This document shows, in pieces, positions 2,945 through 63,079 of a DNA stretch of 64,000 bases; within the stretch, counting starts at the first letter, position 1; each line of letters starts with the position of its first letter. The translations under genes were made by a program, and so were the position numbers. The stretch covers positions 13,764,001 through 13,828,000 of the forward strand of contig NC_043013.1 of the NCBI RefSeq assembly GCF_006345805.1, written 5' to 3'. The notes beneath the pieces are model-generated. The model was not told where the DNA came from, ran no database searches, and was given only the letters and a program-made list of their open reading frames with translations. The stretch is from Octopus sinensis. Taxonomy: Eukaryota.

Positions 2945-2990
2945 ACTCTCAAACAAACCTGCCGTAGATGGTTTTACCAACAAAAGTAAA
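2945..2990 (+). CDS. Microexon A1 (46 nt, phase 2-0), LSNKPAVDGFTNKSK, N-terminal extension of the TRPM-like gene
   Basis: tttgcAG acceptor and GTAAGT donor. Open only in the phase 2-0 frame, which matches the next exon. Flanks homologous to A2 and A3. No transcript evidence. Confidence 0.7.
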
Positions 2991-4095
2991 GTAAGTCTTT
3001 TTAAATTTTAAAATACTTTTCTTTTGTTCTATTTGCCTGAATTGTGATGAATGGTTTGTTGAAATTTTCATCAATGGATATGTATAAAAAGAATACTGTA
3101 TATCCTTTTTATGAATATTCTTATATATTTTCTCACATTGGTGCAATCTTTTATACTGGAGGGCCAAACTATTATTCTTCATTCTGGTAGAGCCAGCTAC
3201 TATTTTTCCAATAAGTAGAGTTGTCTACTTTATCTGTTACTGGTAGTTCCAGAAACTATATTCCATATATTTAGAGAAGCCTTCTACTTTTTTGTATTAT
3301 TATGGCCAGTGTAGTAGTCTTCATTTTAGTACGGCGGGACACTAGAAAGGTCATCATGTAGCTCGAACGACTATGCATCCCGAGGTAGGATAATTTTATG
3401 CAGAATTAGGAGTAGAAAGCAGTAAAGTATGAGCGAAAAGGGTTTGAGCAGAACAAGTTCGTTGTTATACAGGAGAGAGATGAACGAGTGGAGAAGGAAA
3501 ATGATGGACGATAGGGGTTACGAGGTGCCAAAAAGGACATTGAAGCTAAAAGATTGGTACAAATGCGTGGGGAGCAGGAGATATCTTATAATACAGAACA
3601 ACAGGAAAAACAAAGATGGCACAGTAAAAAAGACAAGAGAGATGACATGCTGTTGAGTAGGCTGAGGAATGAGCGGCGAAGAGAAAGGAGAGGGTGACAG
3701 GTGTAGTGGTGGTGGCGGCGGCGAGATAATTTGATGGCATAGTGGGGTGGGTGGGAGTGATGAATGAAAGTGTGGGTGGAAAGAACAACATTAAATGATG
3801 AAGGATGGATAAATAGTGAATTTATTCTGGATAGAAAGAAAAGTGCTATCAAGTAAGAACTGGTGTTAGGGAGTTGATGGAGGTGGTGGATGACTTGAAG
3901 AGAATTGAAATTGGGTGAAGGGCCGAGTTAAACATAAATATACATACACAACTTTACAAGAGCACCACTGAAGTGGTATGTCTTTTGGAGAACTGCATAT
4001 CACAAGTGATACTGGTTCTCTAAAATTTCTTCCATGGTGTCCAAGCTTTTAATCACATCTCTGAAGTTCAAGATCCTGAGATAAGCCTTACGCTC

Positions 4096-4185
4096 ACACA
4101 CATACACACACACACACGCACACACACACACACACACACACACACACGCACGCACACACACACACACACACACACACACACACGA
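4096..4185. repeat. (CA)n microsatellite
   Basis: Seen directly. Confidence 0.95.
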
Positions 4186-4195
4186 GAGCTATTAA

Positions 4196-6212
4196 CACTG
4201 GTCGTCATCTTTTGAAAAGTCGTGTGCTTCTTAAGTGAGATTAGTTAATTCTTACGTATTTTCATGTCCTGAATCCAAATATGACCTTGAAAAATGCATA
4301 TTAGCTATAGGTTGAAAGACACATGACATATAATATTTTATTATTTTATTATAACGTACAGATTTTGTCATTATGTTTAATGCTCTAGTCCGTATCTACT
4401 CCCTGCCTTTTTGCTTGACGCTTATAGAGGGCTGAAGAATAATGTCCAGCAAGCATCGTTTTGCTCCATTTGCCCTGGTACCGCTGTGTCCATAGTTGAA
4501 ATATCTTGGTAAAACTGTCAACCATGTTCGTCACTAACTGCCCCACAGCCCGCTAGAAAAACGTCCAAATGTGTCTCCAAACGTGGATTTAACATGACAT
4601 GTTACATCTCATATTCTTGTAAGCCTTGGCGAGGTTTTCCATTAGTTCTTTAAGAAGCTCTCAGCACTGAGGACCAATGAAGACTCCCTCTTTTATCATA
4701 GCATTGCTCAGTGAGGGTGGGAATTCTGATGTTAAATACTTGAATCCTTGACCAGATTTGTCCATAGCTTTTACAAATTTTTTCATGAGCCCCACTTTTA
4801 TGTGTAGTGATGGGAGAAAAATTTTGCTTGGCTCAGTGAGAGGTGGAAGTTGAACATTTTTCATCCCAAGTTTCAACGTTTGACGAGGTGACCAGTCTCT
4901 CCTGATACAGTGCGAACCTCTTGCGCAGCTATCCCATTCACACAGAAAGTAACAGAACTTGGTGTATCCGTCCTGAGAGCCCATCACAAAAGCAACAACC
5001 TTTAAGTCATCACAGAGCTGCCATTGATGTTCACTATATTTTATGCATTGCAGCATAAGCTTTATATTCTCATATGTTTTTTTCATATATGATTCATAGC
5101 CCACATGAACTGAAGGTTTACTATTGCCATTATGCAACAAGAGAGCTTTCAGGCAAATTTTTCATGAATCCATGAACAGCCTTCAGTGACTGGGTTCGTA
5201 TTCAGTATCAAGTGCTTCCATCAGACCATTAATATTTTTTCAGGCCAATAAATCACCTTCCATTATGAAAAAATTGCTGAACTGTTGCTGACGGTCATGA
5301 AATTTTGAAAGTTTACATCAGCTATTCGGAGATTTCACTGTTGAAGACGAGAGCCTAGCAGCTCTGCCCTATTCTCAGGTAGTCATAGATCCTTGTCAAG
5401 GCCATAGAATTCCCGTTTTGCTATGAGATGTGATCTAGGGGAGTGTGTTTCATCAAAATTTTGGTCATTCTGCAATCCAGCACTGTTATCCTCTTCTGCT
5501 TCCTCTTCACCCCCTTCTTCATCTGACTCGAAGAATATGGAAGTTGGTGCATCAGGAACAGATAGGCATTTTCCACGTGGAACCTGGCGCATACCTAATG
5601 GAATATTTCGATATTCATGGGACACTTTTTTGAAAAGCCCTTTTTCACTGGAAGTACCATGCAGAAATAACAATTGCCTGTATTGTCTGTTGGCTCCCGC
5701 CACGTCATTCGTACAATAAAATATATTCCTTTCCTTTTCCTGTTCAACCATTGGTGAAGACTAGTAGCACAAGTGTTGCAACACATGTGAGGAGCCCACT
5801 TCTTATCCTGGTCGCCAATCTTGCATCCAAAACATAGGTGATATATCTTTCTAACCAGAGCAGTAATACGGCGCTTCTGCGATGCAAAGGTCACCTCACC
5901 TCAAATGTTGCAGAAGTTGTCTGCCTTATTCACAAAAGTGCGAGGCATTTTAAAGAAGACGACAAACAATAAGCAGCTAAACAGAAAATTCGTTCATAAA
6001 TTTATCATTAGCAGAAGTGTTTATATCATTCAGTAGAAAAATAAAATTAATATAAAATGCCTCATATGCATATCAACAGCTTGCTCAATGAATATTTATT
6101 ATAAGTTTAAAAAGTGTTTGGCCAGGAAAATCATTTACCTTTTACCTCAGTATATAAACTTGCACAGCACAACCACATCCTACGACTACTCTAACAATTC
6201 TGAAGGGCAGTG
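4196..6212 (-). mobile_element. Degenerate DNA transposon, Chapaev3-like (CMC)
   Basis: Peptides FGCKIGDQDKKWAPHMCCNTC..WREPTDNTGNCYFC (5595-5894) and CDDLKVVAFVMG..GYTKFCYFLCEWDS..LHIKVGLMKKFVKAMD..KEGVFIGPQ (4661-5140). CACTG at 4196 and CAGTG at 6208-6212 are candidate ends. Family name from motif recall. Confidence 0.65.
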
Positions 6213-60877: not shown

Positions 60878-61305
60878 GGCGCAGGAGTGGCTGTGTGGTA
60901 TGTAGCTTGCTTGCCAACTGCATGGTTCCAGGTTCAGTCCCATTGTGTGGCACCGTGAGCAAGTATCTTCTACTATAGCCTTGGGCCGACCAAAGCCTTG
61001 TGAGTGAATTTGGTAGACGGAAACTGAAAGAAGCTCATCGTATATAGTATATATATATATATGTGTGTGTGTGTGTCTGTGTTTGTTCCCCCCACCCCCA
61101 GCAACATCACTTGATATGTGATGCTGGTGTGTTTCCGTCCCCGTAACTTAGCGGTTCAGCAAAAAGAGACTAATAGAATAAGTACTAGGCTTACAAGGAA
61201 CAAGTCCTGGAGCGGGGGGGGTGATTTGCTTGACTAAAAGGCGGTGCTCCAGCATAGCCACAGGCAGATGATTGAAACAAGATAACGAATAAAAGAATAT
61301 ATGGA
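60878..61305 (+). mobile_element. tRNA-derived SINE with internal TA/GT microsatellite and CR1-like tail
   Basis: Head GGCGCAGGAGTGGCTGTGTGGTA..GGTTCAGTCCC; tail GGCGGTGCTCCAGCATAGCCACAG..TGAAACAAG. Confidence 0.85.
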
Positions 61306-61369
61306 TATTATTTGATATATTTATTTAATAATAACCCATGTTATATTGGTACTGTTGTAAATATTTATA

Positions 61370-62575
61370 TGAGGTTGTCTCACATGAAATGTCACATTTG
61401 AAAAAGGAAACATTAAAATTTGTTTTTTAAGTTTTAGAATATTTATTTATTTAATCAAAATATGATCGTTGTTAATTTATGCCCTTCATCCAACGTTCCC
61501 TCTAAGGCATATATTTATCATCTGATAAATTATCACTGATAAATTGTTGAGATGCTTCAATTACCTCTTCTTTATTTAAGAATGTTTTATTGCATATAGC
61601 AAGCTTGAAGTGTTTAAATATGTGATAACCAGTAGGAGAGATGTCAGAAGAATAAGGAGGATGTGCCAAAATTTCATAATTCAGGCATTGCAACTTGTGG
61701 ACTGTAGCATGAGAAGTGTGAGGTTATGCATTATCATGAAGCAAAATTGGGCCATCACTATTCACTAATTTAGGTTGCTTCTTTTTTAATTTTCCATGCA
61801 TAAAATTTCCTGACAATAGGTTGTTGTTGTTAAAGTTTCTCTTTGTCGCAAAAATGAAAAATGAACTACCTCTTTGTTGACCATACAGTGACCAACTTTT
61901 TAGGATGCAGTGGTGGTTTTGAGTAGTGTTTTGGTGACTCACCAGCATCTAACCACTGTCCTGTCCACCTGCTATTATTATCAAAGAGTTTCCATTTCTC
62001 ATCATACATAATGAGTCAATTCAAAAGTGGTTTTCTTTCCAACCGAGAAATCAACATGGAACACAGAACAAACCTATCCATCTTTTTTACTTTTCCAATT
62101 TTCTTCAAGTGTCAAGAAGCAGTTGCAGATGTCTGGAGCTCTGATCTAATTTTCTGGACTGTTGTTCTCAGATTCCATTTAATCAAAGCATTCAATTCAT
62201 CATGCCAGATATCAGATTTTAGTCTCCCTCTTGATTTATTTTTAATGCTTTCATTTCCTGAACAAAATCTTTGGAACCATTTCTGAACAGTTCTAATGTC
62301 AACAGATTCATTACCAAAAGTGCACTTGATATTTTGTAGAGCTTTGGTGGTAGAGTGACCCAACTTGTATTCATACAAGAATATCACTTGATATTATTCT
62401 GTTGTCAACATTGTCATAAGAGCTGTGGGTAGCAATTTTGAATAATAGAATTGTCTAGAAAGAAAAAGAGTAAGAGTAAACACAAGCATGTACATAGAAA
62501 CTCATTAAAAATCCATTTATAGATGACTCATAAGAAACCCAGTTAAAATACAATATTTCATGTGAGACAACCTAA
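61370..62575 (-). mobile_element. Full-length degenerate mariner (1206 bp) with TIRs and TA TSD
   Basis: TA-TGAGGTTGTCTCACATGAAAT ... ATTTCATGTGAGACAACCTAA-TA (21-bp TIR, 1 mismatch). Peptides FLYEYKLGHS..RTVQKWFQRF, PILLHDNA, LAHPPYSSDISPTGYH. Confidence 0.95.
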
Positions 62576-63027
62576 TATATCTGTGAATAGATCTATTTTT
62601 AACATATGATTCCTATTCTTTGTTACTTGCCTCTGTTACAAAGAGATTTCTCCATCTTTTTAGCTTCTCTTACAATTTTCAACATGTTTCTATTTGCCTT
62701 TCTTTGAGAAATTTCCTCTTTCTAATTTCTGTCTTATTTTCTTAGTTTCCTTTACTCCTTGTTTACTTTTCACCATACTACTCAGGCCCAGTCTCTCTCT
62801 CTCTCTCTCTCTCTATATATATATATATATATATATATATATATATATAACTTTTTACCTGTCACATAATTCCTTAAACTTTAATTTTATTTCCATTTCA
62901 TGCCAAAACACAACTTTTCTTCTATTCTTCACTCCCAGTTAAAAGATAAAGACTGAAATTTGAAACTCTAGACTTATGTCAGATTCACTTTACCAATCTG
63001 GAATTTTCTCATTTACTGATTTTACAG

Positions 63028-63079
63028 ATTTACGAATATTATCTCATCTGGTCATTCAGGATATAAATATGGATATAAG
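63028..63079 (+). CDS. Microexon A3 (52 nt, phase 2-0), FTNIISSGHSGYKYGYK
   Basis: ttttacAG / GTAAGT. The upstream 40 nt match the A1 acceptor region at 35/40. Downstream intron homologous to A1/A2 for about 350 bp. Confidence 0.75.

Follow-up and report, generated by a model that had tools for sequence, protein, structure and literature searches.

The locus considered here raises the question of whether a series of very short exons ahead of a TRPM-like channel gene is coding sequence at all and, if so, how such an array is organised and enlarged. The window, meaning the whole 64,000-nucleotide stretch analysed, is Octopus sinensis C17:13764001-13828000, and it lies within a single RefSeq gene (XP_036366250-254, TRPM2-like, TRPM-beta) whose isoforms X1-X5 map at about 100%. 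The TRPM/SLOG character originally predicted for the locus is borne out by its LSDAT_euk exons and by the TRPM-beta assignment of a relative with a B-A-B-A leader, XP_052830018 (PMC13143021 Table S1). The Pfam domains present are SLOG/MHR1-2 (LSDAT_euk), the TRPM2-like domain and Ion_trans, while the 1087-aa model shows no NUDT9H domain. Among solved structures the best matches are those of TRPM2 (6mix, 6co7 and 6drk), with homology beginning at the core exon. The gene sits in a roughly 1-Mb cluster in which TRPM N-terminal (SLOG) units are amplified in tandem; some models carry two or three SLOG domains, or SLOG without a channel (XP_036366207.1). Gene models (RefSeq Gnomon, GenBank/ENA predictions) serve as indirect evidence of expression throughout.

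The first part of the window, termed block 1, contains the following features, and the annotated CDS of the RefSeq gene takes in A1, B1, the core exon and the three SLOG exons.

1 to 26902 (+): block 1, a colinear 96-97% segmental duplicate of C17 13052302-13075700 (XP_036366207.1 locus)
2833 to 3344 (+): class-A intron frame of A1, recognised by homology to the A2 and A3 flanks and by motif consensus, with TACTAAT branch point, pyrimidine tract, GTAAGT donor and a distal box like TTGAGAATTTCATCAATG
2945 to 2990 (+): microexon A1 (LSNKPAVDGFTNKSK), 46 nt, 1 mod 3, bounded by AG/GT, 100% in the XP_036366251.1 CDS
6470 to 7066 (+): class-B intron frame of B1, with CTAAC branch point, pyrimidine tract and GTAAT donor
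6805 to 6845 (+): microexon B1 (KSDKKWIEENIKLR), 41 nt, 2 mod 3, the terminal B exon
10565 to 10638 (+): exon-like AG/GT stretch, 74 nt, matching the core-replacing piece in O. vulgaris CAI9735606.1
10727 to 10754 (+): candidate microexon CDPCTAHQR, 28 nt, A phase, used in O. vulgaris CAI9735658.1
11929 to 12013 (+): core exon (NSKDEEPSKPCDAFGTVNFVEHYPKTAT), 85 nt, A phase, where the confidently predicted fold begins
14450 to 14628 (+): SLOG exon 4, LSDAT_euk positions 3-63
19509 to 19672 (+): SLOG exon 5, LSDAT_euk positions 62-117
23887 to 24061 (+): SLOG exon 6, LSDAT_euk positions 119-171, end phase 1

The stretch at 10565-10638 is out of frame from B1 and is one A longer than the 73 nt (1 mod 3) inferred for the O. 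vulgaris model. Two further A/B' pairs precede block 1 upstream of the window. The block lies in a recent 27-kb segmental duplicate whose breakpoint falls 2.8 kb past exon 6; compared with its paralog it shows 27 nonsynonymous and 3 synonymous changes, and thus no purifying selection.

The second part of the window carries the remaining microexons together with large insertions.

35229 to 61221 (+): proximal block 2, a 93-96% duplicate of C17 13273655-13289523, itself the distal part of a seven-module array
38113 to 43891 (no strand assigned): window-specific insertion of satellite, plus-strand LINE and microsatellite tail, ending in an assembly gap
45413 to 45444 (+): microexon B2, KDDKDSFEDDR, 32 nt, block 2 leader; the paralog copy is CDS in XP_036366207.1
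51434 to 55653 (+): window-specific LINE insertion (endonuclease and RT)
57627 to 57654 (+): microexon A2, SADDSWLKN, 28 nt
58976 to 59007 (+): microexon B3, DPEIDQLFTK-, 32 nt
59022 to 59047 (+): ATG (MSLYLIINK) and alternative donor, inside the class-B downstream flank
63028 to 63079 (+): microexon A3 (FTNIISSGHSGYKYGYK), 52 nt, 94% to CAI9735657.1

Read-through of the B3 donor gives M-stop, the C-terminus of XP_036366207.1. The segment at 59022-59047, which is identical to the exon that opens the coding sequence in O. bimaculoides isoform X4, is joined to A3 without a frame shift. Another donor that keeps the frame of A3 lies 24 nt further downstream, but the O. vulgaris counterpart of A3 uses 63079. 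Past the window, block 2 continues with B, A4, B4, core2 and SLOG exons 4'-6', so that its core and SLOG exons fall outside.

All seven small exons of the original prediction are found in place, each preceded by a pyrimidine tract and AG and followed by GT. The lengths are 46/28/52 nt for class A, 41/32/32 nt for class B and 85 nt for the core. Every class A length is 1 mod 3 and every class B length 2 mod 3, and thus the reading frame survives only in A+B pairs; a third frame, B', is likewise 2 mod 3. The claim that lengths within a class differ by multiples of 3 extends to 18 bodies, all of which keep their length class. The classes are strict over 7 A and 3 B lengths, and the other reading frames are often closed. 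The predicted joins are free of stops: A1-B1-core is open, and B2-A2-B3-A3, extended to core2, gives 375 nt open. The A1/B1/core junction peptide occurs at 100% in XP_036366251.1, and B/A/B/A junction peptides are found in XP_036366207.1, XP_052830019.1 and CAI9735657.1. The core exon had been grouped with class A; it shares the phase, but its flanks are not those of class A. Once spliced, the leader is open into the SLOG domain. The microexons lie N-terminal to that domain, as first proposed, although in other models the array joins two SLOG units instead of heading the protein. The A and B exons are genuine coding microexons of a TRPM2-like (TRPM-beta) N-terminal leader. This leader is predicted to be disordered (AlphaFold pLDDT 25-28 over residues 1-84, low also because the alignment lacked homologs) and to end in a conserved helix, KKWIEENIKLR, placed at residues 81-91 in B1.

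Homology between intron flanks had been a central observation, and self-BLAST recovers it as direct repeats of 68-75% identity. Class-A flanks pair as 2833-3334 with 62919-63432 (68%), 2860-3344 with 57542-58016 (74.5%) and 57655-58038 with 63104-63464 (74%). Class-B flanks pair as 6470-6812 with 58635-58983 (74%) and 6470-7066 with 45107-45659 (68%), and a third homologous block links 8055-8447, 45659-46017 and 59801-60056. Genome-wide, the three conserved frames (A, B, B') enclose at least 18 unrelated exon bodies. Their consensus retains branch points, pyrimidine tracts and donors. Between types, the intron flanks are 75-82% identical, whereas the bodies are 48-57% identical against 44-49% when shuffled, which is near random. 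Body divergence also exceeds that of the surrounding ±400 nt of intron (26.8 vs 4.7%, p=6e-7; 43 vs 18%, p=0.0015). Unlike these fast-diverging bodies, the terminal B exon is conserved: its pN/pS is 0.41 (p=0.025), indicating purifying selection, against 1.36 (not significant) for non-terminal bodies. On comparison with the consensus string of the family alignment, B1 appears to match its N-terminal SWI..K.EC, and an amphioxus TRPM-like 2 protein has SDTKW where B1 has SDKKW.

The tandem multiplication of a two-exon module holds, and the array is longer than first seen: three pairs belong to block 1 and four to block 2, while a paralog has seven consecutive modules. What did not hold was the picture of one array on one N-terminus. 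A1-B1-core forms block 1, B2-A2-B3-A3 belongs to a second block, and the window contains two alternative 5' blocks of one gene. The two converge, in the same splice phase, on one shared exon that lies at +95.4 kb and is followed by the channel body; in RefSeq X1-X4, exon 6 reaches this exon, at window +95358, over 71 kb. Variable cassette use, also foreseen, is seen in annotated isoform X4, which skips four microexons including A1 in frame (210 nt); X1 minus X4 is 70 aa, or 56+49+59+46 nt. The copy-specific transposons suspected in the introns proved to be LINE and mariner pieces, with LINE RT/endonuclease at 41281-42441 and 51891-54998 and mariner remnants at 18382-18651 and 62115-62393. The stretch from 38.1 to 43.9 kb is recognised as an insertion because the 93-96% paralog matches window positions 38113 and 43892 just 156 bp apart. 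The left flank of the gap at 43792-43891 is the microsatellite tail of the plus-strand LINE. Since the paralog bridges the gap, no exon is expected in it, and no claimed exon or join relies on it.

Several other explanations have to be weighed. In O. sinensis, B2-A2-B3-A3 might be a relic in decay, surviving as untranslated 5' UTR or as intronic pseudo-exons; the functional 5' end would then have passed to block 1, the recent duplicate, with block 2 heading for loss. B2-A3 are absent from every O. sinensis CDS of the window's gene, no ATG is in frame in the block-2 leader, which also lacks the four upstream modules that the paralog and O. bimaculoides have, and the first SLOG exon (4') of block 2 bears a 1-nt deletion, past which the RefSeq X5 CDS begins. 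However, all eight block-2 leader exons retain AG/GT, frame and open reading, the deletion falls in a T-run as is typical of long-read assembly errors, and the X5 model uses block-2 SLOG exons. Moreover, the X4-type ATG and donor at 59022-59047 would supply an in-frame start onto A3; the CDS of XP_036366207.1 includes paralogs of B2-A3 with 93-96% identity, and O. bimaculoides and O. vulgaris models likewise have the counterparts as coding exons. Decay is possible but on the unlikely side.

An assembly artefact appears improbable. On that view a misplaced paralog or haplotig, either block 1 or the 35-61 kb segment, would have been linked in via satellite and gap, and each gene would have a single block in the real genome. 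Misassembly is possible because the block junction at 26.9-35.2 kb is satellite-rich and followed by a gap. The block edges lie in satellite or LINE sequence beside that gap, a separate gap terminates the paralogous array, cluster pieces are duplicated on several small unplaced contigs, and in O. vulgaris the same leader is preceded by a different SLOG unit. Yet ordinary haplotypes would not diverge as far as these copies, which differ by 3-7% and have LINE insertions of their own; RefSeq models X1-X4 splice exon 6 to the sole exon 7' copy in 214 kb, and the A/B microexon finding is independent of block arrangement. It is very improbable that the microexons are prediction artefacts, with homology-driven predictors stringing together chance AG...GT stretches that are not spliced in vivo at all, even though some O. 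vulgaris models hold dubious pieces and the expression basis consists of gene models. Against this stand the absence of stops from the predicted frame in all 18 unrelated bodies (joint probability about 10^-6.6), the strict length classes, the conserved splice signals, agreement of three species and two independent annotation pipelines, multiple isoforms differing by exactly whole exons, and purifying selection on the terminal B exon. Least credible of all is an origin of the modules by exonisation of a dispersed transposon. A dispersed repeat does make up the 3' 220 nt of the B' query, but the genome search with flank motifs, which the original prediction had proposed, confined them to the TRPM cluster: exact matches lie inside it in 8/8 and 14/14 cases, mismatched ones occur at control level, and the A, B and B' frames are found only at cluster sites or on unplaced contigs duplicating them. 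This cluster-only occurrence refutes a dispersed transposon as the source of the frames themselves.

Compared with other TRPM2-like (TRPM-beta) channels, the octopus gene shares SLOG/MHR1-2, the TRPM2-like domain, Ion_trans and, apparently, the motif matched by B1; it differs in a leader made of alternately phased microexon pairs and in tandem amplification of the 5' part (leader and SLOG). A full-text literature search found no paper describing the paired-microexon design, and the recent TRPM surveys PMC13143021 and PMC13402157 do not mention such a leader or 5' amplification. The suggested likeness to schistosome micro-exon genes (MEGs) stands only in part and breaks down at points that define MEGs. 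Both have runs of very short exons, long introns, tandem duplication and little conserved encoded sequence. MEG products are small, secreted and equipped with a signal peptide, and almost their entire CDS consists of microexons, whereas the octopus microexons (28-76 nt) are limited to the cytosolic leader of a large channel. Any MEG exon, its length being a multiple of 3, can be skipped by itself, whereas the octopus exons, 1 mod 3 or 2 mod 3, are frame-neutral solely as pairs. Symmetrical arrangement (10.1101/2023.06.21.545858) and variation by exon skipping (10.1101/2023.06.21.545858; PMC4350168) are reported for MEGs; the skipping is a shared feature, the symmetry is not. As in tandem exon duplication (PMC9013439, PMC9741552), adjacent homologous exon-plus-intron units arise locally with phase preserved, but the octopus unit is an exon pair of complementary phases, and the usual pattern is reversed, with introns conserved and bodies unalignable. 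The two 5' blocks act like a mutually exclusive multi-exon pair, although the microexons of one array are included together and not one of N. SRRM3/4-type bilaterian microexons likewise combine short exons, conserved intron flanks and strong core splice architecture (10.1101/2024.09.17.613571), and octopus class A has UGC immediately 5' of AG. However, regulated microexons are defined as 3-27 nt (10.1101/2024.10.25.620162) against 28-76 nt here, with flank conservation shown among paralogs only.

The whole is best explained, in our judgement quite probably, by frame-locked microexon pairs, two alternative 5' blocks and growth by pair duplication. The array would have grown as an A+B block of roughly 3 kb was duplicated in tandem again and again, probably via unequal exchange between conserved intron frames. 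Selection may keep the near-consensus branch points, long pyrimidine tracts and strong donors of these frames because exons so short need optimal signals. Non-terminal exon bodies would be free to drift, so that leader length and sequence would vary between paralogs, while within one gene the skipping of pairs may also change leader length, annotated isoform X4 being an example.

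The seven small exons of the original prediction, which had sorted them into two classes by their homologous flanking introns, were all located at the predicted positions, each preceded by a pyrimidine tract and AG and followed by GT (7/7). The class A exons A1-A3 measure 46, 28 and 52 nt, the core exon 85 nt, and the class B exons B1-B3 41, 32 and 32 nt. Their flanks were recovered by self-BLAST as homologous direct repeats with 68-75% identity over 250-600 bp, the third predicted block downstream of the B exons included, and alignments revealed higher conservation in the intron flanks than in the exon bodies. 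SLOG exon 4 served as the query of a profile-free search which, together with subsequent look-ups, retrieved octopus gene models. RefSeq isoforms X1-X5 (XP_036366250-254), annotated as 'TRPM member-like 2 / member 2-like', match the window and its surroundings at ~100%, and X1-X3 use the exons listed below.

Coding exons of isoforms X1-X3 (negative positions and those marked + lie outside the window)
-38.6 kb: A-type exon; the CDS begins at an internal ATG, MAEVSGQKTKQ
-36.7 kb: B' exon, PETRETQIQPPMASTSFDI
-27.0 kb: A-type exon, PERQEMAQVYCQKPKQ
-5.1 kb: B' exon, PQASERLIQRYFKPTFVSDI
2945-2990: A1
6805-6845: B1
11929-12013: core exon
14450-24061: SLOG exons 4-6
+95358 to +95468: shared exon, reached across a 71-kb intron and followed by the channel body

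The shared exon is present in a single copy within 214 kb. Isoform X4 splices the first A-type exon straight to B1 and thereby omits four microexons (56 + 49 + 59 + 46 = 210 nt = 70 aa = 1093 - 1023). Isoform X5 uses the SLOG exons of a second 5' block (85241-85360, 90954-91100 and 93374-93544) before the common shared exon, and the comparison of X1-X4 with X5 suggests that the two 5' blocks may be mutually exclusive. In the gene models of O. bimaculoides, isoforms X1 and X2 differ by one microexon of 13 aa.

The encoded protein is a TRPM channel, combining a SLOG (MHR1/2) N-terminus with MHR3/4 and a six-TM ion transport domain. The precomputed Pfam domains of XP_036366251.1 are LSDAT, TRPM2-like PF25508 and Ion_trans PF00520. 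The protein aligns with amphioxus TRPM-like 2 through residue 1085, its channel exons mapping downstream of the window, and its closest solved structures are the TRPM2 channels 6mix, 6co7 and 6drk (E ~1e-140). Within the window, LSDAT_euk (TRPM SLOG) matches three exons (14450-14629, 19505-19678 and 23902-24060); many further cluster sites match as well, and the full domain is present in related models. Homology to solved TRPM2 begins at residue ~96-104, which corresponds to the core exon, and ~95 of the 1087 residues are microexon-encoded. With a 28-sequence alignment, AlphaFold gave residues 1-84 a pLDDT of 25-28 without secondary structure; B1 is predicted as a short helix (81-91), and confident folding sets in at about residue 106. 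The SDKKW of B1 aligns with SDTKW of amphioxus TRPM-like 2, and B1 appears to match the N-terminal SWI..K.EC motif in the family alignment consensus (A3). A C-terminal NUDT9H domain is typical of TRPM2 proper. Unlike its amphioxus relatives, XP_036366251.1 has neither PF25969 nor PF00293 among its precomputed domains and ends at 1087 aa. Membership in TRPS (soromelastatin), suggested for 'octopus TRPM-like 2' in the main text of PMC13143021, was dropped, as Table S1 of that paper gives TRPM-beta for three O. bimaculoides relatives, including XP_052830018 with its B-A-B-A leader.

The window occupies C17 13764001-13828000 of a genome of 2.72 Gb and 13,516 contigs. All module copies in this genome were pulled by anchored extraction, and three intron frames, that is, conserved flank pairs around an exon body, were defined. 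In every frame type the branch point is near-consensus, the pyrimidine tract long and the donor strong.

Intron frames of the modules
Class A: TACTAAT branch point, GTAAGT donor
Class B: CTAAC branch point, GTAAT donor
Class B': TACTAAC branch point

These frames surround at least 18 unrelated exon bodies, the lengths of which follow a strict rule: class A exons (28, 37, 43, 46, 49, 52 and 76 nt) are all 1 mod 3, and class B (32, 38 and 41 nt) and B' exons (56 and 59 nt) are all 2 mod 3. Every body is open when read in the predicted frame (joint chance ~10^-6.6), the remaining frames being often closed; one of the unplaced copies has decayed into a pseudo-exon. The frames are restricted to TRPM-cluster sites or to small contigs duplicating cluster pieces, and at least 17 copies of the core exon exist, most of them at C17 13.06-13.84 Mb on both strands. 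A dispersed transposon as the origin of the flank motifs is not borne out, since exact matches fell in the cluster in 8/8 and 14/14 cases and mismatched ones stayed at control level. Moreover, a box, TTGAGAATTTCATCAATG, located +62 to +129 nt past the class A donor (3058-3075, 57722-57739 and 63171-63188), is kept in 18/18 class A copies, so that conservation reaches far outside the core splice signals. A loop-out RNA helix between the class A upstream box GGAAUUUUCU and downstream box GAGAAUUUC, proposed by RNAalifold, was rejected; the duplex energy was -13.8 vs -14.0 kcal/mol for shuffled sequences, and one-sided changes occurred without compensation.

Between module types, the adjoining 50 nt of intron are 75-82% identical, and the exon bodies are 48-57% identical vs 44-49% when shuffled. 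Divergence between copies was measured for each body against ±400 nt of alignable intron.

Divergence of exon bodies and adjoining introns
Non-terminal pair Bp1/Bp2: body 26.8%, intron 4.7%, p=6e-7
Non-terminal pair L050/L052: body 43%, intron 18%, p=0.0015
Non-terminal pair Aup1/Aup2: body 14%, intron 6%, p=0.04
Terminal B exon (KKWI.ENIKLR): body 2.6%, intron 17.5%, conserved

By codon counts, pN/pS is 0.41 for the terminal B exon (p=0.025) and 1.36, not significant, for the non-terminal bodies, where synonymous sites are raised too; positive selection on the exon bodies was thus not demonstrated. Gene conversion that homogenised the introns is another explanation to be weighed for the excess of body over intron divergence. 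On sequence comparison, we read constraint as acting on the splice frames, on the reading frame and on the terminal helix, and the rest of the leader as free of it.

Block 1, comprising A1, B1, the core exon and SLOG exons 4-6, belongs to a recent-looking pair of duplicated loci: window 1-26902 is colinear with the initial 25 kb of the XP_036366207.1 locus and 96-97% identical to it, with 27 nonsynonymous and 3 synonymous changes in block 1. The homology ends 2.8 kb past exon 6, ahead of the paralog's exon 7. A reading of block 1 as a dead truncated pseudogene was revised, as in X1-X4 exon 6 is joined, in phase, to the shared exon (+95358). Ten nonsynonymous and zero synonymous differences from the otherwise 96% identical paralog fall in the 3' half of the core exon (11970-12013), a cluster that may represent a conversion tract or local positive selection.

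Block 2, as assembled, begins with B2, and its order when spliced from the genome is B2, A2, B3, A3 and then four further exons.

Continuation of block 2 past A3
66609-66640: class B exon, NIVKYSREEE
70194-70269: A4, 76 nt
71303-71343: B4
78199-78280: core2

The joined leader has 375 nt and zero stops and is in frame with the following SLOG exon. The run has coding counterparts in O. bimaculoides XP_052830018-20 and in O. vulgaris CAI9735657.1, in the latter of which it connects a SLOG unit lying upstream to the SLOG of the channel itself. Furthermore, the C-terminal tail of XP_036366207.1 can be read, one exon after another, from a seven-module paralogous array at C17 13261227-13287834. B2-A3 are absent from every O. 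sinensis CDS of the window gene; the block-2 leader has no ATG and lacks four upstream modules that the paralog and O. bimaculoides possess. Exon 4', the first SLOG exon of block 2 (+85182 to +85360, C17 ~13849290), has a 1-nt T-run deletion (GATTTCC to GATTCC) when compared with the O. vulgaris and O. bimaculoides proteins; just upstream, RefSeq starts the X5 CDS at an ATG in the shifted frame. The deletion may be a true frameshift or else an error of the long-read assembly. An ATG with a donor in the B3 downstream flank (59022-59047) would open an ORF joining A3 in frame, and its equivalent is where the annotated coding sequence of O. bimaculoides isoform X4 begins, as first coding exon. All copies of the class B downstream flank (window 59008-59060) contain an ATG and a second donor ~40 nt beyond the normal one, which may explain part of the conservation of this flank.

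As had been predicted, the introns are swollen by copy-specific elements, including LINEs and mariner remnants; two exon-like stretches also lie between B1 and the core exon.

Further intron features in the window
10565-10638: exon-like stretch with AG/GT, one A too long and hitting a stop when read from B1
10727-10754: exon-like stretch with AG/GT
18382-18651: mariner remnant
41281-42441: LINE endonuclease/RT
51891-54998: LINE endonuclease/RT
62115-62393: mariner remnant

Counterparts of both exon-like stretches replace core or SLOG exons in O. vulgaris models. The surrounding ORF-rich region (10.1-11.3 kb) was without a match in the Pfam scan, leaving a hAT/ZMYM1-like transposase, an identity considered for it, unsupported. 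Blocks of TA-rich microsatellite or satellite recur in either orientation (21165-21315, 27480-27850, 28440-28640, 31950-32330, 34940-35300, 38370-38720, 58250-58390 and 59516-59620), several of them at transposon-copy ends and duplication breakpoints, and the inter-block junction is repeat-rich. A ~3-kb LINE-like element is present in two inverted copies (35277-38263 and 40757-43771, 72% identity) flanking the satellite at 38.4-38.7 kb. On its left, the assembly gap at 43792-43891 is bordered by a microsatellite that forms the tail of a LINE on the + strand. A paralogous segment (C17 13273655-13289523), 93-96% identical and colinear with window 35229-61221, has its matches to window 38113 and 43892, the first base past the gap, just 156 bp apart; therefore, 38.1-43.9 kb is an insertion ending in the gap. 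Hidden exons are ruled out by this 156-bp span and none is expected there. No claimed exon or join rests on the gap, the assembled length of which may differ from the real one.

The likeness to schistosome micro-exon genes (MEGs) put forward in the original prediction is superficial only. MEG microexons have lengths in multiples of 3. MEGs encode small secreted proteins with a signal peptide and a CDS made mostly of microexons, whereas the octopus gene encodes a large channel with asymmetric exons (1 mod 3 and 2 mod 3) and only a small microexon-encoded share. Tandem exon duplication is alike in mechanism, with adjoining octopus units being homologous in their intron frames and invariant in phase. 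A mutually exclusive exon cluster contributes one member per transcript, but the octopus models take up to seven consecutive modules together. SRRM3/4-type microexons measure 3-27 nt, and the shortest octopus microexon has 28 nt. The TRPM family is already known and the exons are already in public gene models; for the array, the phase rule, the conserved-intron/variable-exon pattern and the cluster of SLOG units, no description was found in a full-text literature search that included TRPM surveys and a MEG preprint.

Beyond the window, five B' intron-frame copies, 94-95% identical, lie at C17 12752043-12788191 (- strand) with a regular 8.85-kb period, forming a separate tandem array of leader modules ~1 Mb upstream. 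Three models, XP_036366207.1 (C17 13.05-13.29 Mb), XP_036366249.1 and O. bimaculoides XP_014773893.1, have three LSDAT_euk and zero channel domains in 1272-1423 aa, and may represent soluble proteins with several SLOG domains or, alternatively, tandem units that were fused in the models. Additionally, unplaced contigs of 13-57 kb (C446, C431, C2662, C9010, C9011, C10182 and C11018) duplicate cluster pieces at 91-98% identity. These contigs are haplotigs or else uncollapsed paralogs, which matters for how far the assembly of the cluster can be trusted.

It is rather unlikely that the complementary-phase pairs constitute a dedicated, octopod-specific diversity-generating system under diversifying selection in nucleotide-gated or sensory signalling. 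Such a system would combine conserved frames with bodies turning over faster than introns, and would operate by including or skipping exons in pairs, by unequal crossing-over and by rapid change of the bodies. If true, TRPM2-like channels and soluble multi-SLOG proteins would bear N-terminal leaders or inter-SLOG linkers that vary. The conserved introns around near-random exons offer a clean natural system for the recognition needs of very short exons, and the pairing of 1 mod 3 with 2 mod 3 is a simple rule by which the array grows or shrinks with its frame intact. According to the gene models, the cluster would also encode channel-less multi-SLOG proteins, for which the full-text search found no description, and the TRPM counts of cephalopod surveys overlook a large and structurally unusual cluster. 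TRPM gating works through the N-terminal SLOG/MHR region. In this gene, two alternative SLOG N-halves are present together, their identity being estimated at roughly 55% by comparing the block-1 exons with the O. bimaculoides relative, and the SLOG is preceded by a modular, fast-changing and predicted-disordered leader that would be tunable by splicing and copy-number change.
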